The notes under the pieces are model-generated. The model was not told where the DNA came from, made no database searches, and saw only the letters and a program-made list of their open reading frames with translations. The translations under genes and the position numbers were made by a program. A stretch of DNA of 42,607 nucleotides from Octopus bimaculoides (lineage: Eukaryota). The stretch covers positions 50,383,970 to 50,426,576 of the forward strand of contig NC_068985.1 of assembly GCF_001194135.2 (NCBI RefSeq), given 5' to 3'. Below, in pieces: positions 4,441 to 42,607 of this stretch (position 1 is the first letter of the stretch; every line of letters starts with the position of its first letter).

Positions 4441-4446
4441 TTTATT
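4441..4446 (-). promoter_or_regulatory. Candidate polyadenylation signal (AATAAA) for the STEAP gene
   Basis: TTTATT on the plus strand about 150 nt downstream of the STEAP stop. The region is AT-rich, so support is weak. Confidence 0.3.
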
Positions 4447-4593
4447 AAACTTGAAATTCAAGATTAATTTAAATTTTAATAAACGCTTGATGAAACTGTT
4501 TGTCAGTACAGATCAATACTTAATGTTCATAGAAAAATATATTCATTTATCAAATGAACAGATTTAGTTTTTGACAGATTTGTTGAAATTTCA

Positions 4594-9907: not shown

Positions 9908-10140
9908 TCCTCATCATCATCATGTAATGTTCATCTTCCATGCTGGTATGGGTTGGACAGCTTGACAGGAGCTGGCAAGCCACAGGGCTGTGCCAGGTTC
10001 CATTGTCTGCTTTGGCATAGTTTCTCCAGCCATATGCCCTTCCTAACGCCAATCACTTTACTGGGTGTACTGGGTACTTTTTACCTGGCACCAGCACCAG
10101 CAGGGTCACCACATAACCTGCAAGACAAAGATCCCTGACT
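9908..10140 (-). mobile_element. RTE-like LINE/SINE 3' tail ending in (TGA)n
   Basis: CATCATCATCAT..CCATGCTGGTATGGGTTGGAC..ATGCCCTTCCTAACGCCAA; matches the inverted copy at 8170-8255. The family assignment is pattern recognition only. Confidence 0.55.
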
Positions 10141-10606
10141 GAGTAGGAGAGTAGTGTTGGGGGAGGTGGCTTCATGCCACATGACAGGTTAAAGTATAAT
10201 AGAGTGATGAAAATAGGTATCTAGTTATAGAGGAGATACCTGTCTACCCCAGCTGGAAATGAAAGGAAAGAAAAATAGAGTCAGAGACAAAGACAGGCAA
10301 ACAAAGTGAGAGAGAGAAAGATAGATGATGGTGGAGATGAGTTGGGTCATGCCTACAAGGTACAAAGGGACATACCTACAAGGAACAATAAGTGGTACAG
10401 AGAATTATACAGGGTGAGTGGACAGGGAAGGATAGAGGGTGGAATGTTTCATAAGAGTGTGATTAATATTTTATATATTCACACATATGGCATTAATAAT
10501 GTTGTTGGTAAAAGAGCACATTAAAACACAACTTTTTTTATGTTTTAATCAACAGAGAAACAAGAGTGCTCATGACTGTTTACAGGACCTCCAAGACAGA
10601 TGGCAG

Positions 10607-10712
10607 AGGGAGAGAGAAAGGGGGGAGGAAGAGAGAGAGGGAGAGGGAGAGAGAGGGGGAGAGGGAGAGAGAGGGGGAGAGGGAGAGAGAGGGGGAGAGG
10701 GAGGGAGGGGGT
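10607..10712. repeat. GA-rich polypurine tandem repeat (about 18-nt unit GGAGAGAGAGGGGGAGAG)
   Basis: Directly visible; source of the EGEREREG pseudo-ORFs. Confidence 0.9.
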
Positions 10713-11493: not shown

Positions 11494-13958
11494 CACTAGG
11501 CAACGAAGATTTTGTTACAGAAGACCAAATAGGTGTTCCTTGCTAATTTCAGTATGCTGATTTCAAATTTATAATTGGATTTTTTTCTTAACTTTGTGTA
11601 GAATGCAAATCACTTAGTAAAATTTCCTACTACCTCCAGATTTTGGTTTTAATTGACTTAACGCCAATAATATGAAACTTGCTTCTCAAGTTTAAAGCAA
11701 GTTTTGTTTGCCAACTATATACAAATTCTTACAATTTTGATCAATAAAATTTATCCTGAGTTGGTAGCACTGAGTCAAGGGCATAGTAATGGCCCAATGG
11801 TTAGTTGCTATATGACAGTCAAGAAGGGCAGTTGTTGAAGTTCTCTGTTGGTAAACAAGTAATAGGCTGTGGTAACTTGGTGTGTTTTTATAGCATTTGT
11901 TTTGTACTACGGTGTGTATTTCTTTTATTTTCTACATTGTGATTATTACTTTCCACATTTTTTTTCCAAATATTGTATGGTAATTAAAATGCAATCAAAT
12001 AGATGTGCTTGTGTAAATCACCCAGACAACTTTTACTATATATGTGGACAATATACACCAAATTCACAACATAGAAACATAACAACAAACTTGCCTACAA
12101 AGATTATTTTGACTGTAAGTTAGGAAAGCAAGAGCGGGACTGGGAACCACATATCTGCTGTGCACAGTGCAATGCAATGCTAATAGCTTGGATGAATGGT
12201 AAAAGAAAAGTGATGCCATTCTCAGTCCCCAAGGTTTGGTGTGAGATGAAAAATCTCTTCAATGGTTGTTATTTTTGTTTGACAAAGATTGCTGGTTTCA
12301 CAAAGAAAAAAACAAATCAAAAATCATGTACCCAAACTACAAATCAGCAATAAACCAGTACCACACAATGAAACAAATCCACCATCAGTTCCACCAGTTC
12401 ATCTGAAGATTCTACTAATGATATAGAAATAGGGAAAGATGGGGTATATGTTCCAGATGCAACTAGTTCCCCACATTTGTTAAGTCAAGCAGAATTAAAT
12501 GACTTGGTGTGCAATTTGGAATTACCAAAAGTAAAACCAGAGTTGCTTGGTTCCAGACTTCAAGAATGGAATTTCTTCCAGCTAAACAAAGTTTCCCATT
12601 TCTGCCATTGCCATCTACAGTTTTCATCATTTTACTTACAGGAGGAAAACATTTTGTTTCTGCTATGATATTAGCGAACTAAGGGAAAGGATTGGCTTTC
12701 ACTATGATCCAAAAGAATGGAGACTGTTCGTTGACTCTAGTAAAGCTAGCCTTAAAGCTGTATTACTGCACAATGGCAATGAAAAGCCTTCAATACCTGT
12801 AATACATGCCACTTGCCTTAATGAGACTTATGAATCAATGGAACTGCTGCTAAGACTCATCAAATATAAGGACCACATATGAAATATTTGTGGCAGCCTT
12901 GAAGTTGTATTATTACTTCTTGGGTTACAGCTGGGCTACACAAAGCCTATGTGCTTTTTGTGTCTACGGAGCAGCAGAAATGACAAGAACCACTACAAAA
13001 AACATTACTGACCATCTAGAACTGAGCATGTTATAGGTAAACGCATTCACCCTTGGAAAGTACATCTTTCATCACTCCACTTTAGACTTGGTCTTATGAA
13101 AAATTTTGTGACGAGTATGAATCATCAAAGAAGTGGTTTCCAATATTTAAAGGATAAATTCAAAAGAATATTGACAAATGCTAACCTAGAAACTGGAGTT
13201 TTCACTGGGCCACATACCCACAGTGTCATCCACGATTCCTTGTTTCCATCTAATGTAAATGAGATTGAACTAGGAGCATGAACATCTTTTATTGAACAGG
13301 TCAAAAAAGTTTCTTGGAAACTACAAGACTAAAAACTGGGAACTTGAAGAAAACATCCCAAAAAATGGGATGCAGAATGTCTTTGAAAATACAGTTTTAC
13401 ATTCTCATCTTGACTTCTTCCCAGCTAGTGATGAGCATGGTGAGCACTTTCATCAAAAGATTTCAGTAAAAGAAAATAGATACCAAGGTGATTTCAACCC
13501 AAATATGATGAGAGATTATTGATGGTTCCTGCAGAAGGAGAGCTCATCATCCTACAAGTATTAAAGGAAGAGGAAACACCAAAGTTTCACTTAAGAACAG
13601 GAAGTTGCCTTTCGGTAATAACAACAAAATACTAATGCCCTTCAAGGGGGTGGTTGGGCACAGGGGTGGTAATTCTCCCAGCAGAATTCCACTATCTTAT
13701 CTTAAGCCAGAAATCTCTGTTCATCAATTATTTAAGTATGTTTAACATAAAATGTGGCACAGAAAAGTAGCTTAAACAACTTTTGTAATAAAAGCGGGTG
13801 AGAAAAAAATGAAAATTAAGGGTTTTCAGTTACACAAAATCTGGACATAATTGAGAAATTTATAAATCAGATCTGAAATTAGCACCAGAAATTTGATAGG
13901 AATCAGTAGTTTATGTGTCTGTAACACACACAAAAAAAGTTGAAATTGTTGCCTAATG
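11494..13958 (+). mobile_element. Chapaev3 (CMC superfamily) DNA transposon with both ends, non-functional
   Basis: Left end CACTAGGCAAC (11494); right end reverse-complemented CATTAGGCAAC (ends 13958); 3-bp TTA TSD at 11491-11493 and 13959-13961; subterminal inverted TGCTAATTTCAG; decayed transposase inside. Confidence 0.85.
11990..13523 (+). pseudogene. Chapaev3-type transposase pseudogene
   Basis: Fragments CVNHPDNFYYICG, W.PHICC..C, CYFCLT, LSQAELNDLVCNLEL, EWRLFVDSSKASLKAVLLHNGN, LGLQLGYTK.MCFLC, RLGLMKNFV, LHSHLDFFP.SDEHGEHFHQKI..ENRYQG; many stops and frameshifts. Confidence 0.88.
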
Positions 13959-15065
13959 TTATCAAAGACATTCTAGCTGTGACACCTAATCAAAAGATGA
14001 GGTGATCAAAGCTAGGAATGGCTTATGTAGAACTACATTATTTGTATGTCCTTCCCTTTTTCAAGGAATGTGATTGAGATTTGGTTGCTATTTCATAGCA
14101 GTGTAATTAGTAATTTAAGCAAATAGAAATCAAAAATTTTAAACTACCCAAATTAATAGAAACTCTTCTTACATCCAGCAGATATAAGAATAGTTTCTAT
14201 TAATGGATGTAAGAATAGTTTCTGGTTGTAAGTCTGAATAGTCAGCTGGATGTAAGAACAGTTTCTATTAATTTGGCAACAAAATGAATATTAGTAGTGG
14301 TATTATAGCAACTACACTTTATATCTAAAGTATGACATCTTAATATTACTTCTCTGGTTGATAGGAAATGTTCTCTCCAGACAAAGTGAACTCTAGATTA
14401 TGTAAGAAATATAATTCTGCATGACAGTGAAACAGAGTAGTAATTCCTAAATTTATTTTGGCAATGAACCCTTATACAATTTTCCAAAAATCACAGAAGC
14501 CATACCTATATTTTACAGACAACCCCTAACACCTTAATTTTAATTAGGCATTAATGAATCAAAAGTTGCTGCACATAAGAATGTATTATTTTGAAAATGG
14601 TGAATAGCATTGTTTTTCATAAAATTAAATTTTTATAAAAATTTATTGAAAAACACCTTATTTCATGGAACCTCAGAATTTTTTTTTTTTAGAACCTACT
14701 TTGAGAAACATTGTAATAAGGAATCTGTTACAATAGGATAGCTATCTGGAAAGTCTATAAGTCTGAATTTAAATTTGCTCAAATTATCACATATTTCACT
14801 GCAAGTGATGCACCTAAGCTTTTGATTGATTGTTAGTTTAAAAGAAATTGCTCCAAATCTGTTCAGATCCATTATTTTCACTTTTTTCTTTCTTTGCTTT
14901 TTGGGTTTTTTTTCTCATTTACTTAGAAGGAAAGGCCATGTCTATGGATCTTTACAATGACTCTGAATAATGGTTGGTGGGAGGGAGGAAGGTATTCCTA
15001 AACAGGTAAAATAGCCTGAATGTGTGCAACAGAGTGGACTCCACCAAAAGCCTTAAAAGTGTTTG

Positions 15066-21349: not shown

Positions 21350-21830
21350 GTGTTACATGTTTTTGTGAAGGGCAAGAATGAAGTGTCCTGTCTCTGCTAT
21401 TACAGCTTTGTGACACTATTCTCAATAATCTCTTGAAAGGAAAGGGTACTGGCTGCGTAAACGTCGATCTTGCTAAGGCGTTTGACATGATTGATCATGG
21501 AATCATCTATCATAAAGTAAGGGATCTTGGTATCAAGAAAACTTGTAGATGGCTCTTTGACTTCTTACAGGGTAGGAATCAATCTGTTGTTGCAAACGGT
21601 TTTCTCTCTGCGAAGTTACCTGTAGTAAGTGGTATGCCCCAGAGAACGGTTTTAAGACAATTACTATTTATCATCATCACCCTATCAGGTGCACTCAGCC
21701 AACTTGACGAGCTACACCAATAACACAAAAATATCGATGGCTATCCAAACTCCAGAAGATACCGCCATACCCCAAAATTACTAAACCTAATTTATAAATG
21801 GGCAGCTAAAAACAATTTGAAATTTAAAAA
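21350..21830 (+). mobile_element. Non-LTR (LINE) reverse-transcriptase fragment, pseudogenised
   Basis: VDLAKAFDMIDHGII.HKVRDLGI..WLFDFLQGRNQSVVANG.LS....VVSGMPQRTVL; same family as the minus-strand LINE at 25880-30000. Confidence 0.88.
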
Positions 21831-25879: not shown

Positions 25880-27303
25880 TCTATGATTGAGTTTGATCTT
25901 CCCCGAGTATATCATTGAATGATTGGCTGGTCCGGTATCGACGTTAGGAGTTTATCCTGTGTTGTTGTTGTTGTTTTTAATGTTTCAGTGGAGGTTATTT
26001 TTGTATTTCGGATTTTTTTAGGTAAGCAGTTGAACAATTGAATAATCTAAATATCAGACTGGTACAGTAAAATGTTTTTGATCGTGATTTCTAAGGTGTA
26101 TATTTAGAAGCTGACTACCATTTCGTGTATTAAATTTTTATCTAATGCCGAAGTTTGGAACATGTCCCGTCAGGATTTTCCATATGTATATGGTAGTATA
26201 TCTCTTTCTTCAGCCTTCAAGAGAGTAGAGAGGCAGAGTTTTCTGATGTTCCCAGTAATTAAGGTATTTTAACCGAAGGTATTTTATTGGTGAACGTTCT
26301 TTGTAACCCTTCGATTTCTTCCATGAGACCGGATGAGTTAGGAGACCAAAGCTGTGAGCAGTAATCTAATCTGCTCAGATTAGCAGCATACCTACCGGTT
26401 CTCTAGTCACGAAGGTTCGCAGGCTCTATCCTATGAGATGTTAGTATTTAGAGGTCAGTTTGGAAGTATGGCTGATGCATCATTTGACATGATTACTCTT
26501 AAGTTCCGTATGGTATTAACGCTCTGAATTATTGTGTTATTTGGTGTCAAATATTTTGATTTGTGTGTATTCACTCTGTAACGATGAACCTGAAATTTTG
26601 ATGTATTAAATTTCATATTGCTTTTATCTGCCCATTGATAAATGAGGTTTTGTTCATTTTGGAGTATGACGGTATCTTCTGGGGTTTGGATAACATTAAT
26701 ATTTTTGTGTCATCGGCATAACCCGTCAGGCTGGCCAAGTGCACTTGCGATCCTATATCTGATGAGGTGATAATAAATGATAATAGTCTTAGAACCTTTT
26801 CTTGGGGTATACCATTTATTACAAGTGACTTAGAAGAGAGAAAACCATTTGCAGTAAGAGATTGACTCCTACCGCATAGGGAGTCAAATAGCCATTCTCT
26901 GAGTTTTCCTGTGATATCAAAATCCCTTAACTTGCGACAGATAATTTCATGATCAGTTTTGTCAGACGCTTTAGCAAAATCGAGGTATACACATGAAATG
27001 TCCTTTCCTCTCAAGAGATTATTGAGAATAGAGTTACGGTGCTGTAATAATTTTGACAAGGCAACTTCGTCCAGTCTAAAAACCATGCCATGTGTCATCT
27101 AAGATGCTGTTTTCCTCAAAGTATGAAATTATTCTTTTTCGGACAATGTGTTCGATAACTATTGATGTGTGAGATGTGAGAGAAACAGATCCGTAGTTTT
27201 TAGTTTCAGTCCTGCTACCTCCCTTGTATATAGATGTTACTGTTGCATCTTTTAGTAGTTCTGGAAATATGCCGGAATCAAGCAACAACTTTGAAATAGT
27301 ATC
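25880..27303 (-). mobile_element. LINE (CR1/L2/Jockey-group-like) ORF2 relic, 3' part, interrupted by an LTR element
   Basis: LDSGIFPELLKDATVTSIYKGG...NY.SVSLTSH, WHGF, VYLDFAKASDKTDH, SGIP-like NGIPQEKVL, GYADDTKI. The 3' boundary is approximate. Confidence 0.9.
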
Positions 27304-27592
27304 TGTAGCGTGATGGAGGAAAAAGACAACAGAAAAAGAAGCAAAAGGGAGAAAGAAACACAGAGACCTTACCTGTTGACCGTGGCGGGATGAACGATCA
27401 CTGACCAGATAAAAACACGACCTTTCACACGCGCCGTCTATCATCGAACTGCCCGCACGTGCTCCGTGTCCACGCATGCTCCCGTGGCTCTTCCGCCGAT
27501 CCCTGCAGTCTTCACTTCAGTTTGCCTCATCTGCAGTCCTCTCCACCAACACCACATAGTTCATAACAGCCCATAACACCACAAGCACCACA
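27304..27592 (-). repeat. 3' LTR
   Basis: Aligns to 29573-29861 without indels; 20 mismatches in 289 nt by manual count. Confidence 0.95.
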
Positions 27593-27655
27593 CGCCCCAC
27601 TGACTGATCTACAGATCACTCAACCGGCTTTCCAACTCACTCCTCGCTCCCGAAT

Positions 27656-28620
27656 TCATATCTTAATTGGTTTCATAATCAGCCAACCAGGGAGGAGGGT
27701 GTCGCTCCCTCTGTGGTCGCTGTGCGACCCCGGACTGGCCTGAGTTCCTGGCATGCTGTTACTGACTTCATCTTCTTGCCTACTGCTGCTGTCTCCATCT
27801 TCTTGCCCACTGCTGCTGGTTTCATCCTCTGAGGCATTGACAATCTTCCGCACATCCAAAACAATGCGTGGCATACCATCGACAGAGACGTTGTTCTTCA
27901 AATTGATGGAGGTTATTGTTCCCTTTCCCCATTGTGATGTATACCGTGCATTTGGGGGTTTTAACCAAATTTCTTCCCCGACCTGCACGAAGGCGTGCTC
28001 TTCCTCTCCCACGGGTCGCATTGATGCAGTACACGGATACCTCCATTCGTACCTGAATATTGCCCTGTGTAGCACCGACTTCTCAGCCTGTCCTGACCTG
28101 GGCGACATATTGTACCAAAATACGGTCTCGATTGGTGAAATGTGGCCCATCTCTGCCATGGTCTTGATGTTGCCTTTCCACCACTCCACTGTCCATCTCT
28201 GGCCGTCGAAGACAACACGAAAGTCCTGGTCTTCAATGGTGTGCGCAGCATAGTCTTCTTCGCGGTTCTCACCAATGCACGGTCTCGCCATACATGGTTT
28301 CCCCGAAACCCCGAATGTTACACCGGCCTCGTTGACAGTGACACCTCCTAAACGGGTGATTGCATCCATCCCCATCACCACGTCAATCTCGTCCACCAAG
28401 TGGCCAACTACAATTGCTTGCAGCGTCAGCTTTATTCCCTGCACCACAATCTGCGCATCTATAATGCCTTCACAGCGTACCTCTCTTCCGTCGATTGCCT
28501 TCACACTGCTTTCTCCACTCCATGTCTCTACCACTTCTGGAGTCATCAGGGTCGTCGTACAGCCCGTGTCCACAAGGGCTCGCGACATCTTTTCCTCCAC
28601 CAGAATGTCGACTACAGGTA
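27656..28620 (-). CDS. Gypsy pol remnant: aspartic protease fused in frame to the integrase C-terminus (RT, RNase H and most of IN deleted); open to the gap
   Basis: RALVDTGCTTT (retropepsin D-T-G), MDVVMGMD-like IDVVMGMDAI, then FDGQRWTVEWW joined directly to IKTMAE..ISP.E.VFWYN.SPR and VGEEIWLKPPNAR.TSQWGKG (IN end/GPY-F-like). No YxDD motif. Confidence 0.8.
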
Positions 28621-29560
28621 NNNNNNNNNNNNNNNNNNNNNNNNNNNNNNNNNNNNNNNNNNNNNNNNNNNNNNNNNNNNNNNNNNNNNNNNNNNNNNNN
28701 NNNNNNNNNNNNNNNNNNNNNNNNNNNNNNNNNNNNNNNNNNNNNNNNNNNNNNNNNNNNNNNNNNNNNNNNNNNNNNNNNNNNNNNNNNNNNNNNNNNN
28801 NNNNNNNNNNNNNNNNNNNNNNNNNNNNNNNNNNNNNNNNNNNNNNNNNNNNNNNNNNNNNNNNNNNNNNNNNNNNNNNNNNNNNNNNNNNNNNNNNNNN
28901 NNNNNNNNNNNNNNNNNNNNNNNNNNNNNNNNNNNNNNNNNNNNNNNNNNNNNNNNNNNNNNNNNNNNNNNNNNNNNNNNNNNNNNNNNNNNNNNNNNNN
29001 NNNNNNNNNNNNNNNNNNNNNNNNNNNNNNNNNNNNNNNNNNNNNNNNNNNNNNNNNNNNNNNNNNNNNNNNNNNNNNNNNNNNNNNNNNNNNNNNNNNN
29101 NNNNNNNNNNNNNNNNNNNNNNNNNNNNNNNNNNNNNNNNNNNNNNNNNNNNNNNNNNNNNNNNNNNNNNNNNNNNNNNNNNNNNNNNNNNNNNNNNNNN
29201 NNNNNNNNNNNNNNNNNNNNNNNNNNNNNNNNNNNNNNNNNNNNNNNNNNNNNNNNNNNNNNNNNNNNNNNNNNNNNNNNNNNNNNNNNNNNNNNNNNNN
29301 NNNNNNNNNNNNNNNNNNNNNNNNNNNNNNNNNNNNNNNNNNNNNNNNNNNNNNNNNNNNNNNNNNNNNNNNNNNNNNNNNNNNNNNNNNNNNNNNNNNN
29401 NNNNNNNNNNNNNNNNNNNNNNNNNNNNNNNNNNNNNNNNNNNNNNNNNNNNNNNNNNNNNNNNNNNNNNNNNNNNNNNNNNNNNNNNNNNNNNNNNNNN
29501 NNNNNNNNNNNNNNNNNNNNNNNNNNNNNNNNNNNNNNNNNNNNNNNNNNNNNNTTATGT

Positions 29561-29572
29561 GCCGAAATAGCT
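29561..29572 (-). promoter_or_regulatory. Candidate primer-binding site AGCTATTTCGGC abutting the 5' LTR
   Basis: It lies immediately inside the 5' LTR and is the exact complement of nt 1-12 of metazoan tRNA-Phe(GAA), GCCGAAAUAGCU. Confidence 0.6.
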
Positions 29573-29861
29573 TGTAACGTGATGGAGGAAAAAGACAACA
29601 GAAAAAGAAGCAAAAGGGAGAAAGAAATACAGAAACCTTACCTGTTGATCGTGGCGGGATGAGCGATCACTGGCCAGATAAAAACACGACCTTTCACACG
29701 TGCCGTCTCTCCTCGAACTGCCCGCACGTGCTCCGTGTCCACGCATGCTCCCGTGGCTCTTCCGCTGGCTCCTGCAGTTTTCACTTCCTTTTGCCTCATC
29801 TGCAATCCTCTCCACCAACACCACATAGCTCATCACAGCCCATAACACCACAAACACCACA
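29573..29861 (-). repeat. 5' LTR
   Basis: TG...CA termini on the minus strand; followed on the plus strand by the GTATC TSD. Confidence 0.95.
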
Positions 29862-30965: not shown

Positions 30966-31409
30966 ATATATGGTAAAAATGCCTAAAATGATCGTCTTTA
31001 CCATTATCGAAGGCTTTGGAATTTGCCTTTTTATAACCTAACCTAACCGATTTTCAAAGGCAGTGACCAAAACGTGCACTTTAGTGAATTTAGTCATGCG
31101 CGCGTGTGTGTGTGCGTAGGTATTTTAAGTTCAAATAATGTTATGCATCAAAATTATTATATTGCCGTGCAATTTATAAGTATTTCCTTCTTTCAAAAGC
31201 GTTTTCTATTGACCCACACATACACACAAATAAAATATTAATAATAGAGGTTAATTATATACATTAATCTTGAGAATGCAACAACATCAGAATCTGGTAA
31301 CTACTTCTTGGTCCATGGCAGTTCACGTGATTGTTCTTGCCTTACTCATGTCGGCTGTTCCGTTCAGGAATTTTTTCCCACGAGAGTTCCGGACCCCAGT
31401 TATGAACTT

Positions 31410-31430
31410 ATTTGCATACAGCCAATCAGA
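31410..31430. promoter_or_regulatory. Candidate promoter module: octamer ATTTGCAT plus CCAAT box AGCCAATCAG
   Basis: Exact motifs 2 nt apart in a locally CpG-containing, non-repeat-looking segment; E-box CACGTG at about 31324. No transcript evidence. Confidence 0.3.
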
Positions 31431-32563
31431 GCTCAACTATCAAACTAACTTATGAGCGCATATCGACTGATAGGCGATAAGATAAAGCCACTTGGGTAAG
31501 GAATGACCATGCTTCTTTTCCCTTTTAAGAATGTTGTTCTTGTTCTTGTTTCAACCGTGGCTGCATCTGCATAGTTATTTGTGTTGCTGTTTACTTTGTA
31601 AAACAGTAAGGGGAGAGGGTTGCTAGCACATAACCCTCTACCTACATTTTTCCCACTACTATACTGCTAACTTTTGAGGAATCAGTCAACAATCACAATT
31701 CCTCCCAATAGACACCATCACTGAATTAACATCTTTGCAAAGCACCATCATTAAAGAAATATTTTCATGGTAGCTAAGAAAAATACAAACTTTATCGTGT
31801 TGTAGTAGACTCCAAGCCGTTAAGCTTGGATCTAAAACTTCAGCCAGTCTCTTAGTTTCAAATCATGTACTAGGTTATTCAGATATCCTTGTGACAGCAA
31901 ATGTGATTCATTGGAGAAACAGGTAGCCTGTAATGTAGGATTAGATATGTTTTTATCATTTTCTTCATATGTTCCAGCTTGGTTTGATTCCTGTTTGTAG
32001 TTATAACACGTTAAACAACAAGTATGTGTGGTCGTTTAAATCCAAAATAAAGTCCATAGCTTGTCTTAAATAATGGTGTAAAGTTACATTTCTGAGATTT
32101 TTAAAGTTGGATCCTCACATAAATAGAAGGAATTTAAATGATTCACAGCTCCACAGTTTCACAGAAAACACACACTACTTGTTAACACTGACATTTACAA
32201 GTTGATTAACTTGCAGTTGCTCTACATACAGGCTCTTGACTCATATCCGAACAGGTCTAAATATGAATAGTCTGCTGTCTTGACCGAATTTATCCTAGCA
32301 GTATTATCATACTGGAAAAAGGGAGTAGAACTTTCGTTGCTGTTGTGAATATTCCCTTTGTTGACTAAAAATTATGTGCTCGCAATTGAGGGAGTATTTA
32401 ATTAAATTAGCGACCTATGTGTCATACTTGATGAATACACGCAGTCGCTAGGTCAGCTACTGTATTGCTGTATTACTGAATAGAAAAAAAAAACATCTAC
32501 TGTATTGCTGTATTACTGTATTGAAAAAAAAAACATCTCTTATGGACTAGCTAAATACAATAA

Positions 32564-32622
<59 letters not shown>

Positions 32623-33331
32623 NNNNNNNNNNNNNNNNNNNNNNNNNNNNNNNNNNNNNNNNNNNNNNNNNNNNNNNNNNNNNNNNNNNNNNNNNNNNNN
32701 NNNNNNNNNNNNNNNNNNNNNNNNNNNNNNNNNNNNNNNNNNNNNNNNNNNNNNNNNNNNNNNNNNNNNNNNNNNNNNNNNNNNNNNNNNNNNNNNNNNN
32801 NNNNNNNNNNNNNNNNNNNNNNNNNNNNNNNNNNNNNNNNNNNNNNNNNNNNNNNNNNNNNNNNNNNNNNNNNNNNNNNNNNNNNNNNNNNNNNNNNNNN
32901 NNNNNNNNNNNNNNNNNNNNNNNNNNNNNNNNNNNNNNNNNNNNNNNNNNNNNNNNNNNNNNNNNNNNNNNNNNNNNNNNNNNNNNNNNNNNNNNNNNNN
33001 NNNNNNNNNNNNNNNNNNNNNNNNNNNNNNNNNNNNNNNNNNNNNNNNNNNNNNNNNNNNNNNNNNNNNNNNNNNNNNNNNNNNNNNNNNNNNNNNNNNN
33101 NNNNNNNNNNNNNNNNNNNNNNNNNNNNNNNNNNNNNNNNNNNNNNNNNNNNNNNNNNNNNNNNNNNNNNNNNNNNNNNNNNNNNNNNNNNNNNNNNNNN
33201 NNNNNNNNNNNNNNNNNNNNNNNNNNNNNNNNNNNNNNNNNNNNNNNNNNNNNNNNNNNNNNNNNNNNNNNNNNNNNNNNNNNNNNNNNNNNNNNNNNNN
33301 NNNNNNNNNNNNNNNNNNNNNNNNNNNNNTG

Positions 33332-33386
<55 letters not shown>

Positions 33387-34021
33387 CAAAGGCTTCAACG
33401 ACAGAAGAAAGATATGAAGCCATAGTAAATCAGTTCATGTATGTTCGCAGGAGATGTGTGTGTCAGCAATGATTGATGCCGTCGAATTTTTCTAGCCAAG
33501 CAAGAATTTGACATAAATTCTTACAGCAAGTTATAGTTGTGCCACGGCCACAGGTCTGTTACGAGACAATCTGAGGAGAAATTCTCTCCCCTTTGATGTC
33601 ATGAGGGCAAATCATGTCTTTCAATCTCTTTATACCTAATGGTCTCTCAAAGAAAAGTAAATAAAGAAAAGTAAATAAATATCGTTAATGATATCTCATT
33701 ATGTTGTTTATCCCAAAATGGTTATTTATAATGACTGGGATTCTAATGAGCTACGATTCTGTAATTTCTATTGTTTATTCTTGTCGTCAAATAGCTGCTG
33801 TTAAAACAAATTCTCAATGTTTCTACAAGAGCTCTGAATGGCTAGCGACATGTTGATGTCATCAATTCCTAACAAAATCTTATTTGGTGCTTAGTTATTT
33901 CCCGTGTGAATATAGGGATTCAGGTTCTGTTCCTAGGTAGTTGGTTTTGGGGACACTGCCAATATTCTTGCTGCAATACATACATACATACATACATACA
34001 TACATACGTACATGCATACAT

Positions 34022-34333
34022 ACAGGATAACCCCGAAGCTAAGGAGATGAAAACCCATAATGAGGTAGAGGCCATTACCACTCACAATATCAAAGAGTAT
34101 TGGTGGAATGTCCCAATAAAAACCTCAATAAAGTGCAGACATAACAGACCGGATATAGTAATCTGGGACAGAGAAGAGAAACTCTGTACAGTAGTAGAAA
34201 TCAGCTGTCCTGCGGATGTCAACATCTCACTAAAGATTAGAGAAAAAGAGAACTACGCCGAGCTACTGAGAAATTTACAGATACTCCACCCAGACTACAA
34301 GTTCAAATTCATACCCGTGATTGTTGGGGTATT
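34022..34333 (+). mobile_element. Restriction-like-endonuclease (R4/Dong/NeSL-type) non-LTR retrotransposon C-terminal fragment
   Basis: YWWNVPIKT..KCRHNRPDIVIWD....CTVVEISCPAD.N...K..EK..YAEL...L.IL.P......IPVIVG, a PD-(D/E)xK endonuclease signature; runs into the gap. Confidence 0.85.
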
Positions 34334-34738
34334 NNNNNNNNNNNNNNNNNNNNNNNNNNNNNNNNNNNNNNNNNNNNNNNNNNNNNNNNNNNNNNNNNNN
34401 NNNNNNNNNNNNNNNNNNNNNNNNNNNNNNNNNNNNNNNNNNNNNNNNNNNNNNNNNNNNNNNNNNNNNNNNNNNNNNNNNNNNNNNNNNNNNNNNNNNN
34501 NNNNNNNNNNNNNNNNNNNNNNNNNNNNNNNNNNNNNNNNNNNNNNNNNNNNNNNNNNNNNNNNNNNNNNNNNNNNNNNNNNNNNNNNNNNNNNNNNNNN
34601 NNNNNNNNNNNNNNNNNNNNNNNNNNNNNNNNNNNNNNNNNNNNNNNNNNNNNNNNNNNNNNNNNNNNNNNNNNNNNNNNNNNNNNNNNNNNNNNNNNNN
34701 NNNNNNNNNNNNNNNNNNNNNNNNNNNNNNNNNNNNNN

Positions 34739-34801
<63 letters not shown>

Positions 34802-34854
34802 GAGTAGATGTAAGGATAAGATCTTTCCCTCAAGGGCTCGGTGTGAAGAGTTGC

Positions 34855-35241
34855 CTATCTAAGGTAGAGTTGGTGAGGTGTAAATTCATTTTTCTCCTTA
34901 CATGTTATTGTTGTAGTTAACCATGCGATATGGTGATGAACGTTGTTGATATTTTCTACAAGTTTTGTTTCCCACGTAGGTTGTTTCCGTTCAGTAATTT
35001 CGTTCCATTGTTCACAATATATTTCTCCTAGGCGTTCTTTAAGAGTAATAGCGGCTCTGTATATAAGAGTATTTATATTCCAGTAATTAATATCCCATAA
35101 TTCCATGTGCTCTCCTGCAACATCGTTGATAACTTTAAACATTAGATCGGTCGGAGTTTTTCTCACTCTTGTTGGAAATGGTCTGTTGCTGAAAGAATGC
35201 TTCGAGAAAGTAGCAAATTTTTTGCGAATTGTATTACGCAA
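34855..35241 (-). mobile_element. Probable N-terminal ORF fragment of an R4/Dong-like non-LTR element
   Basis: INTLIYRAAITL and KQPTWETKLVENIN...IAWL resemble the 'IN.LIY.AA' and 'P.W..RL...I...R..I' segments of this group. Weaker than the 34022 call. Confidence 0.5.
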
Positions 35242-36992
35242 TCTTCGCTACTGAGTCAGTTAAATTTGGAGACACTCGAATTTAGCGATGGCGGGAGCGG
35301 TGGACTGTTTGCATTATTTTTTTACGCCGCTTCTAGCAGATGTTGGCCCATTCTCATTGTTTCACAGTTAAGAGTAAAGAATACTCTATTCTGATTTTCA
35401 GCTAAATATTCTAATAAATTTGTTAATGTCTAAATAACTCACGTTAATTTTGACCATGTGAACATCAATACCACGTGAGGAAGACGTTAAGAAATTTATC
35501 GGCCAGTGAGTTCAAAATCCCTCGCCCTAATGAATTCAATTCAGTGTGCATCATAAATAGTCCCGCATAGAAAAGAGACCCGTACGAACTTCCTGCGGNN
35601 NNNNNNNNNNNNNNNNNNNNNNNNNNNNNNNNNNNNNNNNNNNNNNNNNNNNNNNNNNNNNNNNNNNNNNNNNNNNNNNNNNNNNNNNNNNNNNNNNNNN
35701 NNNNNNNNNNNNNNNNNNNNNNNNNNNNNNNNNNNNNNNNNNNNNNNNNNNNNNNNNNNNNNNNNNNNNNNNNNNNNNNNNNNNNNNNNNNNNNNNNNNN
35801 NNNNNNNNNNNNNNNNNNNNNNNNNNNNNNNNNNNNNNNNNNNNNNNNNNNNNNNNNNNNNNNNNNNNNNNNNNNNNNNNNNNNNNNNNNNNNNNNNNNN
35901 NNNNNNNNNNNNNNNNNNNNNNNNNNNNNNNNNNNNNNNNNNNNNNNNNNNNNNNNNNNNNNNNNNNNNNNNNNNNNNNNNNNNNNNNNNNNNNNNNNNN
36001 NNNNNNNNNNNNNNNNNNNNNNNNNNNNNNNNNNNNNNNNNNNNNNNNNNNNNNNNNNNNNNNNNNNNNNNNNNNNNNNNNNNNNNNNNNNNNNNNNNNN
36101 NNNNNNNNNNNNNNNNNNNNNNNNNNNNNNNNNNNNNNNNNNNNNNNNNNNNNNNNNNNNNNNNNNNNNNNNNNNNNNNNNNNNNNNNNNNNNNNNNNNN
36201 NNNNNNNNNNNNNNNNNNNNNNTTAACGTGAGTTATTTAGACATTAACAAATTTATTAGAATATTTAACTGAAGATCAGAATAGAGTATTCTTTACTCTT
36301 AACTGTGAAACGATCGTACTAAATTAACTAAAGGCAGGTGGGTTTTTTTACTCTTCTCTACTGTTTTTGTTCTGTGTGTATCAAAAATATCGCTATCAAT
36401 CTGGAGTAATAATTTGTAGTTTTGAAATCAGTAGTTCTTTGACTGCTATTTCTGAATTCTCAGTATGTTGGAGAAGCAGGTTACTGTCAATCCCTATATA
36501 TTTATGATTATATATATATATATATATATATAAATCCACGCTAAATAAATAACTGTCTTAGCTTCTACAAATTCCATAACATAGACTTGTTGCTTAGTTC
36601 AATGCGAATAAAGTCAGACTACTACTTCTAAATATGTATTTTTTGTATGTGGAAGTGAATTATCGGTTGTGTGACCTTGATAATGCATTATAATACATGA
36701 TTTAGAAACTTGAGAAATATATTTCACTAAAAATGTTTTGAAACTTATTTAAAAATAGAACAGTCCAATACCTCAAAAGGGAAATACAAGTTGTTTCTTA
36801 CAAATGAAGTAGCTTATCTTGATTTCACACAAATCGACCAGATAGTTCTCGATTGACTACAGCGAAGTCTATGACTTTGAAGTAGTGATTTATCTTAATG
36901 TTGAACTTTGTTCAAGATAAAAGTTTTACTTACATTTTCGATTTCCCGGAAAACGTATTTCTACAAGCTGTATTTTATTATATACATTAACT

Positions 36993-37700
36993 ATGTACAC
37001 CATACTATCTCCCAGTGAGATCCGCTATACTCAAGATTCTATTTCTTCATGCTTCCAGAATGGAAACGATATAGAAGATCTTATTTTAGATATTATCAAT
37101 GGTCAAACCAGATCTGACGAAATTCGAACAATCAGAGTTTTCTTTAATGATGGAAAATATTATAGTGAGGACAATAGGAGACTTTACGTGTTCAAAGCAG
37201 TGCAAGAGTTAAGTGAGCCAAACTTGACAATTAAGGTTAAATTAACTTCATATTCTGATTTTCAAGAAAATAAGTTCACTACAAGGAATGGTGGTTTCAG
37301 AATAAGAGTAAGAAGAAAGATGAATGATACGAAGGAACGAAGGAATGTGAAACATCATCTATCTGAATACTTTCCGAGCCTTACCTCTGGAGGTCCTACG
37401 AAAACTACATATACAAGTCCCAGAACTACCACTGTAAATGCTGCTAAAACTAAATATAAAAGTGTCAGAACTACAGTTAAAACAGTTACTGGTCATAGCA
37501 ATATATTACCTTCATCATCGAGCCTTACAACCGATGACGTTTTCAGACGGAACGCTTCAAGTGCTACGAATGTTCCAAGGAATGCTCCACGTAAAATTTG
37601 CATAACGCCGAAGCCAAGTGCTCCGTATGTTCCACCTCAAACTCACATAATGTCGAAGCGAAGTCCTCCAAAGGAAATATGTTGCTGTGTAATCCTTTAA
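36993..37700 (+). CDS. Uncharacterised 235-aa protein: N-terminal ParB/Srx-like (Tox-ParBL1-type) domain, low-complexity linker and C-terminal CaaX (CCCVIL)
   Basis: Intact ATG-to-TAA ORF in very AT-rich DNA. Motifs LSPSEIRYTQDSI, IRTIRV, YSEDNRRLYVFK and KFTTRNGG; ends KRSPPKEICCCVIL*. Confidence 0.8.
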   Translation: MYTILSPSEIRYTQDSISSCFQNGNDIEDLILDIINGQTRSDEIRTIRVFFNDGKYYSEDNRRLYVFKAVQELSEPNLTIKVKLTSYSDFQENKFTTRNGGFRIRVRRKMNDTKERRNVKHHLSEYFPSLTSGGPTKTTYTSPRTTTVNAAKTKYKSVRTTVKTVTGHSNILPSSSSLTTDDVFRRNASSATNVPRNAPRKICITPKPSAPYVPPQTHIMSKRSPPKEICCCVIL

Positions 37701-37742
37701 ACAGTTACTCTGATGCTACTGACAAAAATCAATGTAAATTTT

Positions 37743-37866
37743 GGCACTATCATGCTATTAGCTGTCAGAAGTGAAAGTGCTCACTGCTAGTGAAGTATCT
37801 GTCTGTCTGCCTGTTGATTCTTTGGCTACTGACAGCTAATACCATGACTGGCCGGATCGAGCTATA

Positions 37867-37899
<33 letters not shown>

Positions 37900-38495
37900 A
37901 TCTATCTATCTATTNNNNNNNNNNNNNNNNNNNNNNNNNNNNNNNNNNNNNNNNNNNNNNNNNNNNNNNNNNNNNNNNNNNNNNNNNNNNNNNNNNNNNN
38001 NNNNNNNNNNNNNNNNNNNNNNNNNNNNNNNNNNNNNNNNNNNNNNNNNNNNNNNNNNNNNNNNNNNNNNNNNNNNNNNNNNNNNNNNNNNNNNNNNNNN
38101 NNNNNCTATTACTCGAAAGTTCGCGCGTCCGCGCTAGCTAGTCGTGAGTGGTCGATCCTATTATTTTTAAACTTCAAACTTCATTTGTTTTCTATTTTGA
38201 TAAATTCTCTCTGTTGAAAATTATATTTTTATATTTTAAATAATTTGCAATTTCAGGAAATATGTTTTTATATTAAATTTGTGTTTTCTACTCACGACTA
38301 GCTAGCGCGGACGCGCGAACTTTCGAGTAATAGATAGATAGAGAGACAGACATATAGCTCGCTCCGGCCAGTCATGGTATTAGCTGTCAGTAGCCAAAGA
38401 ATCGACAGGCCAGCAACAGGCATGCAGGCAGACAGACAGATACTTCACTAGCAGTGAGCACTTTCACTTCTGACAGCTAATAGCATGATAGTGCC
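37743..38495. mobile_element. Foldback MITE with long TIRs (GG-termini) and 8-bp TSD TAAATTTT; Merlin- or MULE-like
   Basis: 37743-37914 plus 38106-38149 is the reverse complement of 38290-38495, with a 140-bp AT-rich spacer. TAAATTTT occurs at 37735-37742 and 38496-38503. Confidence 0.88.
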
Positions 38496-39062
38496 TAAAT
38501 TTTAATTTCGTTGAATTCTGCCTGTTTTACTTTAGGTGAAAATAGAACTTACATTTAAAACTCTTATTCTGTGGATGTGAAGCATGGAACTTCTACAATT
38601 TAATTTTTGTGAAATCCTTTAATATTTTTACGGATAATATCCGTAGATAAACTTAGAACTATCCGAAACAAACGAAAATGAGGTAAGTACAGAATCTGTT
38701 GTTATACTAAATGTTTGATAAAACTCGTTACAGTGTACACAAACAATTGAGGAAGTTTTTTTGAAAAAGAAAAAAAGTGAGAGAATGATAGATAGATAGA
38801 TAGATAGATAGATAAACAAAGAGAAGCGGGGGAACGAGATTATGATTTCCATTAACAAGTTAATCTGGCCATTTTAAAGACTTTGCAGGTAAGTTCGACC
38901 AAGAGAATTAAAAGCGAAATTAATCATCAGAGAACAAAGTTCACCCGTTAATGCCTGAATTTGTTTCCTTCCCTTTTTAAGATTTTCATACTATGCTGAA
39001 AGCTGAGATTATAGTGTTGCCAATATTCAAAAAAATGTAGGTTATTATCTAAAAGACACTTA

Positions 39063-39208
39063 GGTGTGGCTGTGTGGTAAGAAGCTTGCTTCCCAACAAC
39101 ATGGTTCCGGGCTCAATCCCACTACGTGGTACCTTGAGCAAGTGTCTTCTACTATACTCTCGAATCTTCTACTATACTCTCGAACCGACCAAAGCCTTGT
39201 GAGTGGAT
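39063..39208 (+). mobile_element. 3'-truncated SINE (8990 family) with an internal 20-bp tandem duplication
   Basis: GGTGTGGCTGTGTGGTAAGAAG..CCTTGAGCAAGTGTCTTCTACTAT; TCTTCTACTATACTCTCGAA occurs twice at 39145-39184. Confidence 0.85.
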
Positions 39209-39574
39209 AAGCCTAACTTTAGGGTCAGAATAAAAATTATCTTTATGGTCTTTTAAAGTAATTCTAGGGTGCATCGGTACATAAGGTTCTGTCTTACTAT
39301 CAAGTTCGTATTTAAACATTATTAATTTAGAGGCCTTATTAATCAAATTTAAAGTATTTTCTGGAACTATCTTATATTTCTTATTAATTTCTTTCTCTAA
39401 TAAATAATCATATAGTTTTACATCTAGTTTATATAAGTTCCTAGTTTTATCAGATTGTACAATAATACCATCCATATTTCTAAATTGTTTAATTTTAATG
39501 GCTAAATTTCTTAAATAATCATTATGTCTATTTGGATATTTATGAAATTTAATATTTTCCACTACTTTCCAAAT
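39209..39574 (-). mobile_element. Penelope-like element pre-RT ORF fragment
   Basis: SDKTRNLYKLD, INKKYK..., RITLKDHKDNFYSDPKVRLI matches the PLE 'ADKT.N.Y...ITLKDHK.NF...P.CRLI' segment; runs into the gap. Confidence 0.82.
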
Positions 39575-41099
39575 NNNNNNNNNNNNNNNNNNNNNNNNNN
39601 NNNNNNNNNNNNNNNNNNNNNNNNNNNNNNNNNNNNNNNNNNNNNNNNNNNNNNNNNNNNNNNNNNNNNNNNNNNNNNNNNNNNNNNNNNNNNNNNNNNN
39701 NNNNNNNNNNNNNNNNNNNNNNNNNNNNNNNNNNNNNNNNNNNNNNNNNNNNNNNNNNNNNNNNNNNNNNNNNNNNNNNNNNNNNNNNNNNNNNNNNNNN
39801 NNNNNNNNNNNNNNNNNNNNNNNNNNNNNNNNNNNNNNNNNNNNNNNNNNNNNNNNNNNNNNNNNNNNNNNNNNNNNNNNNNNNNNNNNNNNNNNNNNNN
39901 NNNNNNNNNNNNNNNNNNNNNNNNNNNNNNNNNNNNNNNNNNNNNNNNNNNNNNNNNNNNNNNNNNNNNNNNNNNNNNNNNNNNNNNNNNNNNNNNNNNN
40001 NNNNNNNNNNNNNNNNNNNNNNNNNNNNNNNNNNNNNNNNNNNNNNNNNNNNNNNNNNNNNNNNNNNNNNNNNNNNNNNNNNNNNNNNNNNNNNNNNNNN
40101 NNNNNNNNNNNNNNNNNNNNNNNNNNNNNNNNNNNNNNNNNNNNNNNNNNNNNNNNNNNNNNNNNNNNNNNNNNNNNNNNNNNNNNNNNNNNNNNNNNNN
40201 NNNNNNNNNNNNNNNNNNNNNNNNNNNNNNNNNNNNNNNNNNNNNNNNNNNNNNNNNNNNNNNNNNNNNNNNNNNNNNNNNNNNNNNNNNNNNNNNNNNN
40301 NNNNNNNNNNNNNNNNNNNNNNNNNNNNNNNNNNNNNNNNNNNNNNNNNNNNNNNNNNNNNNNNNNNNNNNNNNNNNNNNNNNNNNNNNNNNNNNNNNNN
40401 NNNNNNNNNNNNNNNNNNNNNNNNATTTTAATTGAGTTTTTTACCTGTAATTTTGGATTTTGTCCCTAATAATATTATATATATATATATATATATACAC
40501 TCATACAATCAAGTAAAGGCAATAAACCTCATTAAGGGATCATAAATCCAATGAAAATACTGGTTAGTTGGCTATCTATAGGAAGTTCGAATAAGGAGAA
40601 AATAGAGAGGTAATTAATAAAATTATTTATTAACTATAAAATATAACATCTCGGATCTTTTTGGTTTGACGGGCAACACTTGTTTTCTTAACGAAACACT
40701 TTCAAACTTGGGATACTGGTAGAATGTGTCATATAAAACAACTTTTCTCTTAGCCTTCTTAACAAAAGAATTGTACATCGCACTAGTTTGATTTGAAGAA
40801 GATTTGGCTGCTATTTCTAGGAAATGAAGCACTTGGTGAAGGTGCATTAATAATTCTGCCAGCTCCAATAACAAGTGCAGGCAATATTCAAGTATTTTGA
40901 TGGCTTTTCCCCCCTTATTAGCTATTATTCAATCAACTGAAACAAGTATAATAGTGTAATTCAAGCATAGTAGCAGCCAAATCTTCAAATCAAACTCTAC
41001 CATCATTTAGAAAGTGTGTTACTGAGTACTAGCGAAAAATTGTTACAAACACAGACACGCACAGCGTAATTCATTATATAAACAATATATGCGTATACA

Positions 41100-41290
41100 C
41101 ACACACACACACATATATATGTATATATTTGTGTGTCTGTATGTCCTCCCACCATCATTTGACAAACGATGTTGGTGTATTTATGTCCGCATAATTTAGC
41201 GGTTCAGCAAGACAGCGATAGAATAAGTAAGTACTCGCACAGCTGCAGTCAAAATGACAGAAAGAAGTAAACGAATGAAAGAATAAAAGA
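41100..41290 (+). mobile_element. 3' half of a SINE (8990 family), following a CA/TA microsatellite
   Basis: GTGTCTGT.TGTCC..CA(T)CATTTGACAAACGATGTTGGTGT.TTTATGTCC..TTAGCGGTTC.GCAA..GATAGAATAAGTA is colinear with the reverse complement of 9000-9210. Confidence 0.75.
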
Positions 41291-42607
41291 ATATCTCTAT
41301 AATTACAATTGTTGTTGAAATATCAATTACTGTTGTGGTTCTCGTAGAAAAAGGACCGCGACTGCCACGTTCAGTACATGTTCGAAAACGTCGCATAAAT
41401 TGAAAATTTATTTGTCAAACTTGAGAACATATCTCTCTCTCCATCTCTCTCTTTCTCCGTCTCTCTCTCCGTCTCTTTCTCCGTCTCTCTCTCTCCCTCT
41501 ACGCACGTACACACACACGTGTGTGTGTGTGTGTGGATATGTTTAAAAAAATTGACTATTAATTTTTTTTTTTTTTGCATTAATTCCTAGCTTCATATTC
41601 TTTCGCCGAAAGGGCATCGTTTTATATACAACTGAAAAAAAATTATCGGCATATTCGAGTGTGAAACAAAAATGTCTACGTAATCATAATTTGGCAATTT
41701 TCTCATACAACACGAGTGTTTCCAGTGACCAATATTTGATGGAGAGACTTTCTCATTTGGTTTGGCCTAAGACAAATAAATTGGATTGTGAAATTATAGA
41801 CGAATGTTTTCTGATGTCAACGCATGGTATTTTTTCTACGTTCTATTATATTAACCTAATTTTATTTGTCATTCAATTTCCAGCAGTTTATAACTTGTAA
41901 ATATAAACAGTAGTAAGTAAAAGTTGGCTGCTGGCTAACTAAAATAACGGTGGTTTAGCGAGATTTAGAGGGAGAGTAGTCACTTAACCTGCTAGAAGTA
42001 CCCGACCGGCTAGGAGTAGGTAATTGAATAATGTAGTACAAAACCTACATATAAGAAAGACGAGATGAGTATAGTTGGATTGATTTTAATACAAATATAT
42101 TTAGCCTAAACTGATCTGGCGATAAATAACATCAAAGTTGTTTTGTACGTTAAGATCCGGATCCTAATAATGAATAGAATATATATAATACAAACTTGCA
42201 TATATATGTATAGGGCTTTCCTATAAGGTGTTATCCACCCCTGATTGGAACTCTCCCGTATGACATGTAAGCATGCTCAGTGACTTGCTTTAACAGTTGC
42301 AATCAGCTGAATGCACATTGCCAGTGACATTTGACATAATTACCCACACTCTGTGGTCAGGATTCTTTTTTTGGTTTGATGTCGGCATCGAAGGGATTAC
42401 CAAACACCGGACAATACAGTGAGAGCAGCTTTCACTCACATCGTGGTATTCGATGCTGTGTACGTGTCTGTCGTGGTAAAATATGCCACTCCTTAATTGT
42501 TGCTTTGCTTTCATCCGTAGCACGAGGTAATTATGTCATTATCTGTGAAATCCGGCAACTTACAAAGATCTTTAGATCAGGCAATACTTCACCGAGAGGA
42601 GATATAA

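Follow-up and report, generated by a model that had tools for sequence, protein, structure and literature searches.

Introduction

Modules of the PT-HINT and RHS type are hallmarks of bacterial polymorphic toxins. Tox-ParBL1, a large family with no member of known activity, spans such bacterial warfare toxins as well as eukaryotic proteins. Its published definition (PMC3482391) rests on three features, namely a ParB fold by prediction, an N-terminal Ser/Thr that is conserved in the family but absent from classical ParB, and an [NT][RT][RT] motif that is mostly N-R-R, with Neisseria gonorrhoeae NGK_2271 as the type member (Zhang et al. 2012, Biol Direct 7:18). Metazoan and other eukaryotic occurrences had already been recorded in 2012 (PMC3482391), and the immunity genes listed for the family were Imm-SUKH and Imm44, with DUF7660 not among them (Zhang et al. 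2012, PMC3482391). For ParB-type toxin domains these authors preferred a nuclease role because nucleases dominate polymorphic toxins, and they also stressed that the nuclease label of ParB was built on erroneous assumptions (PMC3482391). Here, we examined a gene at positions 36993–37700 (plus strand) of a 42,607-nucleotide stretch of the Octopus bimaculoides genome (assembly GCF_001194135.2, contig NC_068985.1, positions 50,383,970 to 50,426,576; hereafter the window), the product of which combines a Tox-ParBL1 domain with a predicted C-terminal lipid anchor.

As read from its sequence, the product would be a cytosolic three-part protein composed of a Tox-ParBL1 domain of ~110 residues, a basic disordered linker of ~120 residues and a CVIL box that follows two cysteines. 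Its closest relatives outside the animals are the killing domains located at the C-terminus of polymorphic toxins of the RHS and contact-dependent inhibition (CDI) type in bacteria. We consider it probable, although by no means assured, that this protein is geranylgeranylated and tethered to a membrane, and that it is a nucleotide-dependent enzyme with a ParB fold and an ancestry among bacterial toxins, probably acting as a conflict or innate-immune effector. An earlier note on this DNA, written by a model reader that saw only the letters and their open reading frames (ORFs), had arrived at a similar interpretation, which the analysis supported wherever it was open to computation. Tox-ParBL1 and its occurrence in metazoans were known before from comparative genomics; what seems undescribed is the lipid-anchored architecture that molluscs and tunicates conserve, and the literature searched agrees with the earlier reader that no characterised animal protein is built in this way.

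Results

An intact coding region with an orthologous locus in Octopus sinensis

The gene is an intact ORF of 235 codons running from ATG to TAA, with no interruption of the coding region. Its product ends in ...KRSPPKEICCCVIL, also quoted as ...SKRSPPKEICCCVIL, and thus terminates in CCCVIL*; the motifs I10-RYTQDSI-17, Y57-SEDNRRLYVFK-68 and K94-FTTRNGG-101 were all located in it, as previously described. The window contains ~37% G+C and 11% N and has a stop-codon probability of 0.069 per codon, and an open run of 235 codons would be expected ~3e-4 times by chance over the whole window and both strands. Homologues were found with E values down to 1e-104 (O. sinensis). Given this expectation and these homologues, the ORF is far beyond chance, and a chance ORF was rejected. 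The only other N-free ORFs of >200 aa in the window belonged to a STEAP-like gene and a retroelement fragment. The earlier description of the gene as intronless applies to the coding region only, where it held; the untranslated regions (UTRs) may contain introns.

A region of ~11 kb (31006–42212) was collinear with the O. sinensis LOC118763415 locus at 82–93% nucleotide identity, and the window ORF is therefore the orthologue of LOC118763415. A gene carried by a transposable element (TE) was rejected because this orthologous locus is collinear over ~11 kb and because paralogues share only the ORF and ~70–90 bp upstream of it. Immediately 5' of the ATG, ~90 bp (36900–36992, plus strand) were kept in alignments between the O. 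sinensis orthologue and diverged paralogues, with similarity to the paralogues, the coding synonymous divergence (dS) of which is 0.35–0.45, beginning at 36921. Within it lie TTGTTCA, GATTTCC and a CACAAG/CTACAAG element, the last of which may represent an initiator or a splice acceptor; the block as a whole is a candidate 5' UTR, core promoter or splice acceptor.

The nearest proteins were uncharacterised proteins from Octopus. O. sinensis LOC118763415 is 63–65% identical over its full length and ends in SCCVIL, while the endings of O. sinensis LOC115211823 and O. bimaculoides A0A0L8FR60 are RCCVIL and SWCVIL. O. vulgaris CAI9723621 is an intact orthologue of 441 aa that ends in SCCVIL and has six 33-aa repeats in its tail; one copy of the same unit is carried by the window protein. 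In the O. sinensis orthologue, coding tandem repeats of 99 bp (x2.9) and 45 bp (x3.1) were found, and to judge from these comparisons the length of the linker changes quickly via coding tandem repeats. The second O. sinensis locus (LOC115211823, L002) holds two tandem intronless copies ~3.5 kb apart (10001–10648 and 13529–14272), which the NCBI model fuses by joining the start of copy 1 to the end of copy 2.

Residues 1–112 adopt a predicted ParB/sulfiredoxin fold

Searches of Pfam, NCBIfam and PDB sequences with the window protein returned no match, even at E ≤ 10, and a 70-sequence profile run against PDB sequences gave only chance matches (levansucrase and beta-lactamase, E ~1). Since sequence alone does not reach the ParB/sulfiredoxin (Srx) superfamily, a comparison of folds was needed. 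An AlphaFold2 (AF2) model of residues 1–112 (36993–37328), based on a 46-sequence alignment, had a predicted local distance difference test score (pLDDT) of 93.9 and a predicted template modelling score (pTM) of 0.87, with the elements in the order strand, helix 27–35, hairpin 47–58, helix 61–73, strand 80–85 and a terminal strand. When this model was compared with PDB using Foldseek, nearly all of approximately the first 45 matches belonged to the ParB/Srx superfamily, the best being Noc (7ol9; E = 3.6e-3, prob 1.00) and others including Atu1540, ParB-CDP (6sdk), Arabidopsis and human sulfiredoxin, KorB, PadC and SerK, a free serine kinase. In the viral library BFVD, the matches were ParB/Sulfiredoxin phage proteins. 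The ParB/Srx fold that had been proposed for residues ~1–110 was thus recovered by structural comparison.

The sequence D60-N-R-R-L64 (37170–37184) lies at the N-terminus of helix 61–73, directly after hairpin 47–58, which is the site of ParB GERR and Srx GGCHR. This shared topological place agrees with the earlier proposal that DNRR is the counterpart of the ParB arginine patch. Placement by hhalign, using comparison sequences that match PDB entries 6sdk and 1xw3, was weak, aligning DNRRLYVFKA with GERRFRAAK of B. subtilis ParB (9 columns, probability 0.2%) and DNRR with the CHR of human Srx GGCHR (probability 40%). In the latter alignment E-D-(gap)-N-R-R was set against G-G-C-H-R-Y, such that the catalytic Cys of Srx fell opposite the gap and N61 opposite the His. 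No conserved Cys was found in the domain among 69 relatives, C20 being the sole Cys of the folded domain, and a sulfiredoxin orthologue was rejected because the catalytic Cys is missing. No ParBc or helix-turn-helix (HTH) match was found in Pfam even at E ≤ 10, and only residues 1–112 are predicted to fold. Because it has no HTH or dimerisation domain and no Srx catalytic Cys, the protein is neither a partition protein nor a sulfiredoxin.

The top structural match, Noc, is a ParB paralogue that binds membranes in a cytidine triphosphate (CTP)-dependent manner, and it is followed by ParB-CDP. These matches, together with an order of domain, hypervariable region, polybasic stretch and CaaX box that mirrors Ras/Rho, favour a reading in which the protein is a regulatory switch, i.e., a ParB/Noc-like module gated by a nucleoside triphosphate (NTP; possibly CTP) that signals at membranes in a small-GTPase-like layout. 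We regard this as improbable, however, as the protein has no ParB box III (ENLQR), dimerisation or HTH module, the bacterial members of the family are toxins with immunity proteins, and fast evolution and copy-number change are unusual in core signalling switches.

The domain is shared with the C-terminal toxin domains of bacteria

An exhaustive phmmer search returned 1265 cluster representatives (50% identity clusters) at E ≤ 1e-3, all of which matched via residues ~1–110. In these relatives the domain was either N-terminal, often followed by a low-complexity tail, or at the extreme C-terminus, and PT-HINT, RHS repeats, RHS core, PT-TG and YD-shell modules were found upstream of it in members of the C-terminal type. 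Between the octopus domain and the bacterial C-terminal domains behind RHS/PT-HINT modules there was direct HMMER homology, at 35–47% identity. The octopus domain also has the ParB-like fold, a Ser/Thr pair (T13/S16) and the N61-R62-R63 motif by which Tox-ParBL1 is recognised. Assignment to this branch, as proposed from the sequence, fits the definition of the motifs, the PT-HINT/RHS relatives and the immunity-like ORF downstream of the bacterial genes.

Conservation among the 69 relatives was concentrated in three blocks. The first, I10-R-Y-T-Q-D-S-I17 (37020–37043), contains the N-terminal Ser/Thr of Tox-ParBL1 and a near-invariant Q14 (Q14 94%, I17 94%, D15 81%, S16 77%). The arginine block was more strongly conserved (N61 99%, R62 100%, R63 96%, L64 100%), and the third block is the K94-F-T-T-R-N-G-G101 loop (37272–37295; G101 100%, T96 91%, N99 86%, K94 78%).

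A genome scan with a pattern built from a bacterial-only alignment identified 59 bacterial loci, including those of Microbulbifer, Shewanella, Burkholderia, Streptomyces, Nocardia, Paenibacillus, Bacteroidota and Planctomycetota; no Neisseria locus was returned by this pattern-based scan. At the 25 loci that were inspected, the domain ends 0–9 residues before the stop codon in ORFs of 120 to >1400 aa. In ~20 of the 25, an ORF of ~85 aa with the signature WEN..L..FLEA...YE lies directly downstream or overlaps (L003–L055, about 4300–4600); it matches Pfam DUF7660 with E values down to 7e-33. Firmicutes loci L015, L025 and L026 have another ORF, of ~130 aa, instead. This gene order suggests a toxin–immunity arrangement, with DUF7660 as a candidate cognate immunity protein for the ParBL1 fold; the pairing of DUF7660 with this toxin was not found in the literature searched. 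A virus-borne origin was rejected, as two IMG/VR scans gave a single contig, of bacterial type.

The bacterial relatives bear on a further reading, in which the architecture is the same and the domain is a membrane-tethered DNase or RNase that degrades foreign or mislocalised nucleic acid at the surface of a membrane, with the basic linker helping to capture the polyanion. A nuclease is the role favoured by Zhang et al. 2012 for ParB-type toxin domains, the tail carries a net charge of +15, and the bacterial homologues are delivered to the target cytoplasm with dedicated immunity proteins, like nuclease toxins. We nevertheless consider this reading unlikely, if deserving of serious attention: the same authors traced the ParB nuclease label to erroneous assumptions, the nearest solved structures are NTP-binding clamps, phosphotransferases and kinases, and the conserved positions contain no typical acidic metal-binding cluster save D15 and D60.

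In a neighbour-joining tree, the bacterial (C-terminal-type) members formed a block apart from the animal (N-terminal-type) members, and CaaX-bearing members were dispersed over the animal block. The bacterial origin raised as a possibility in the earlier note is in agreement with this tree and with the literature. Named animal members come from the cephalopods Octopus and Argonauta, the bivalves Tegillarca, Mya, Mercenaria and Potamilus, one chiton, and the tunicates Ciona, Styela, Phallusia and Clavelina. In bivalves and tunicates, many members (P0010, P0011, P0014, P0018, P0033, P0039 and others) hold 2–3 tandem ParBL1 domains per polypeptide; Styela XP_077973299 has two full ParBL1 domains and ends in CTIL. 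Two proteins of the dinoflagellate Amphidinium carterae (P0006 and P0007) have the reversed layout: the N-terminus (MGVIATAIATGATCACVEFLASYFLAKCL) is hydrophobic and rich in Cys, the linker is Q/P/A-rich and the ParBL1 domain lies at the C-terminus, which suggests that membrane tethering arose by convergence.

A basic tail, predicted to be disordered, ends in a conserved CaaX box

In the model of the full-length protein, residues 115–122 and 124–235 had pLDDT <50 and are predicted to be disordered. The low-complexity tail noted previously was confirmed by composition, S/T/P/K/R making up 56% of residues 109–229 (net charge +15) cf. 33% of the domain. The linker (residues 113–229; 37329–37679) has its homologues in the tails of the O. 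sinensis and O. vulgaris orthologues, which have been expanded by repeats.

The protein terminates in C230-C231 and the CaaX box C232-V-I-L235 (37680–37697), followed by TAA, with a Cys four residues from the end, aliphatic residues at a1 and a2, and Leu at X. It is an established rule that a CaaX box with Leu at X directs geranylgeranylation by geranylgeranyltransferase I (GGTase-I). C230 and C231 are candidates for palmitoylation, and the basic residues K222, R223 and K227 lie just upstream of the cysteines. No signal peptide or hydrophobic segment was found in the protein, the folded domain of which begins at residue 2, and the maximum 18-residue hydropathy over the last 45 residues was 0.39.

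CVIL was kept in every octopus copy, including five further octopus proteins (from O. sinensis, O. vulgaris and O. bimaculoides). Outside the octopuses, Ciona intestinalis had CCCVIL and CCCCVIL, Styela clava had CKCTIL and the chiton Liolophura had CCVIC, and other relatives ended in CAIL, CIIL, CTIL, CNIL and CIIM. The CaaX ending, the conservation of which had been proposed as a check, is therefore retained in orthologues and paralogues and recurs in similar form in tunicate and chiton relatives, and it is preserved though the tails are unalignable. A CaaX box was present in 17/109 animal-type members vs 0/94 bacterial-type members, often preceded by a polybasic patch; a further 4/109 animal-type members had C-terminal Cys clusters (two of them CCNIL) and 6/109 a hydrophobic tail-anchor helix. 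Together, these endings point to a recurrent design of membrane tether, leash and ParBL1 domain. The CaaX-anchored form of Tox-ParBL1 is not mentioned in Zhang et al. 2012 and was not found elsewhere in the literature searched.

The C-terminal cysteines could instead form disulfides in a secreted or venom-type toxin. The toxin ancestry of the domain and the fact that cephalopods make proteinaceous toxins would be in keeping with this, but it is very improbable: the domain starts at residue 2, with neither a signal peptide nor a hydrophobic stretch at the N-terminus, the folded domain has one Cys (C20), and many lineages keep the Cys of C-[VTAIN]-I-L at precisely the fourth position from the C-terminus.

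Substitutions avoid family-conserved positions

Ratios of nonsynonymous to synonymous divergence (dN/dS) were calculated pairwise and for the domain only. The ratio between the window gene and the O. sinensis orthologue was 1.06 (dN 0.075, dS 0.071), that among paralogue groups was 0.43–0.62, and that of the two tandem O. sinensis copies was 3.8, based on few changes. Pairwise dN/dS alone is not decisive, and the orthologue value likewise rests on few changes; thus, the placement of substitutions was tested. Four octopus copies differ at 43 sites, of which 5 fell within the 34 family-conserved positions vs 13.5 expected (hypergeometric P = 2e-4). In the dN/dS check suggested previously, the orthologue ratio was thus ~1, although conserved sites are avoided by the substitutions. 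Such a pattern indicates a gene that is functional and evolves fast, not one in decay. Tandem intronless duplicates, dN/dS values of 1.06 and 3.8 and variation in the repeat length of the tail make up a conflict-gene signature.

These data have to be set against the reading that the gene is a decaying relic left by an old transfer from bacteria, that it is not expressed and drifts neutrally, and that its CaaX box has no function. The orthologue dN/dS also fits neutral drift, the gene models have no UTRs and the neighbourhood is TE-rich. In addition, the O. sinensis orthologue (L001 10001–10959) has a frameshift within its 99-bp coding repeat; this may be an assembly indel, and the NCBI model LOC118763415 spans it by a 131-bp 'intron'. 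We hold a relic to be improbable all the same, given that a 235-codon frame is expected so rarely in this AT-rich window, that the 441-aa O. vulgaris orthologue is intact up to its SCCVIL end, that substitutions avoid family-conserved positions, that the CaaX box is retained in molluscs and tunicates despite unalignable tails, and that the upstream 90 bp are kept among paralogues.

Other features of the window

On the minus strand, 4594–5958 is an intact intronless ORF of 454 aa. It has an NADP oxidoreductase domain at its N-terminus (F420_oxidored, E = 4e-13) together with a transmembrane domain of the ferric-reductase type, and is a STEAP-family metalloreductase encoded in one exon. TE debris was found at 273–1100, 3411–3818, 21433–21723, 26613–28600 and 29555–29860; one fragment is of mariner/Mos1 HTH_48, several are of reverse transcriptase, and a retroelement ORF carries a gag-type aspartyl protease. 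N gaps are numerous in the window (the 11% given above), in which CA/GA/TC microsatellites also occur. On the 3' side of the gene, 38500–38859 (minus strand) was 83.5% identical to O. sinensis L001 10998–11337, with an ORF of 76–79 aa (MLMEIIISFP...) in both; this block is probably conserved non-coding sequence or a repeat and not a gene.

Discussion

In the mechanism that we propose for the membrane-tethered enzyme, C232 would be geranylgeranylated by GGTase-I, -VIL would be removed and the new C-terminus methylated, while C230 and C231 may be palmitoylated. The protein would then sit at the cytoplasmic face of a membrane with its catalytic domain on a long leash. There, like ParB, Noc and Srx, the domain would bind a nucleoside triphosphate, using its N61-R62-R63 patch and Q14-D15-S16 loop, and would either hydrolyse it or pass a phosphate to a membrane-proximal substrate. 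Biochemical precedents for such nucleotide chemistry are provided by Srx, SerK and the ParB/Noc CTPases. We infer the prenylation, membrane location, nucleotide chemistry and immune role: the location follows from the predicted prenylation, with or without palmitoylation, and the role of an innate-immune or conflict effector is suggested by toxin ancestry, tandem duplication and fast evolution.

Several observations weigh against the proposal of a membrane-tethered, nucleotide-dependent immune effector, among them the orthologue dN/dS of ~1 and the O. sinensis frameshift discussed above. With respect to transcript support, the exact window protein was absent from the public assemblies searched, so that no transcript-type contig was linked to it, although Logan contigs were obtained for relatives, and the NCBI models of the O. 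sinensis relatives carry no UTRs. With respect to the fold, sequence-only searches fail to connect the domain to ParB/Srx, both hhalign placements of DNRR are weak, and the Foldseek TM-scores are just ~0.5, for which reason we regard the domain as a divergent member of the superfamily. When bacterial immunity proteins were compared by tblastn with the window and the octopus loci, only chance matches were obtained, and no inhibitor or immunity homologue lies nearby. A recognisable anchor is lacking in 82/109 animal-type members, many of which are fragments. Finally, the literature searched yielded the 2012 definition alone and no experimental work on any Tox-ParBL1 protein, and because no member has a measured activity the chemistry of the domain is a guess from its superfamily.

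In a broader and more speculative form, which we consider doubtful, animals (molluscs and tunicates at least) would possess an unrecognised class of lipid-anchored, nucleotide-dependent ParB-fold enzymes or switches with a Ras-like layout, in which a domesticated bacterial contact-toxin serves as an innate-immune executioner or as a CTP/NTP-gated signal at the cytoplasmic face of membranes, e.g., those of pathogen-containing vacuoles. In the animal branch, the combination of a catalytic domain with a leash and a lipid anchor predicts the site at which the enzyme acts. If the protein were indeed an NTP-dependent enzyme of invertebrate innate immunity, it would represent a further bacterial toxin domain recruited by eukaryotes, and it would extend ParB-fold nucleotide chemistry (CTP switches and Srx/SerK phosphotransfer) to eukaryotic membranes.

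Compared with bacterial Tox-ParBL1, the octopus domain shares the ParB-like fold, the N-terminal Ser/Thr, the N-R-R motif and direct HMMER homology. It differs in being N-terminal and intracellular and in being fused to a disordered linker and a CaaX signal, and it lacks trafficking modules, repeat modules and a neighbouring immunity gene. Sulfiredoxin (1xw3/1xw4, 6ky4) is likewise a eukaryotic protein with a ParB/Srx fold of ~110 residues; it is a single domain of independent bacterial origin that binds ATP at the equivalent arginine motif. The octopus protein lacks the catalytic Cys of FGGCHR and has blocks of its own (RYTQDSI and KFTTxNxG), whereas Srx has neither linker nor CaaX box.

At its other end, the protein resembles the Ras/Rho GTPases (e.g., RhoB, ...CCKVL) in its flexible basic region, upstream Cys and CaaL box that predicts GGTase-I modification. 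These GTPases, however, carry a P-loop G domain in place of the ParB/Srx fold, and the octopus linker is approximately six times longer. Guanylate-binding proteins (GBPs) with prenylation signals (GBP1 CTIS, GBP2 CNIL, GBP5 CVLL) are CaaX-anchored, fast-evolving and tandemly duplicated membrane effectors of innate immunity; they have no homology to the octopus protein, and the analogy, drawn from general knowledge, is one of deployment alone.

The best structural matches remain the ParB/Noc/KorB clamps (6sdk, 7ol9 and 8qa9), with which the domain shares a topology of strand, helix, hairpin, arginine-motif helix and strand, and in which GERR appears to occupy the place of DNRR. In contrast to these clamps, the octopus protein has no HTH, C-terminal dimerisation domain or ENLQR box, and no similarity to them is detectable by HMMER. 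Noc is itself a membrane-associated ParB-fold protein, but whereas it reaches the membrane via an N-terminal amphipathic helix, the octopus protein would do so via a predicted C-terminal lipid.

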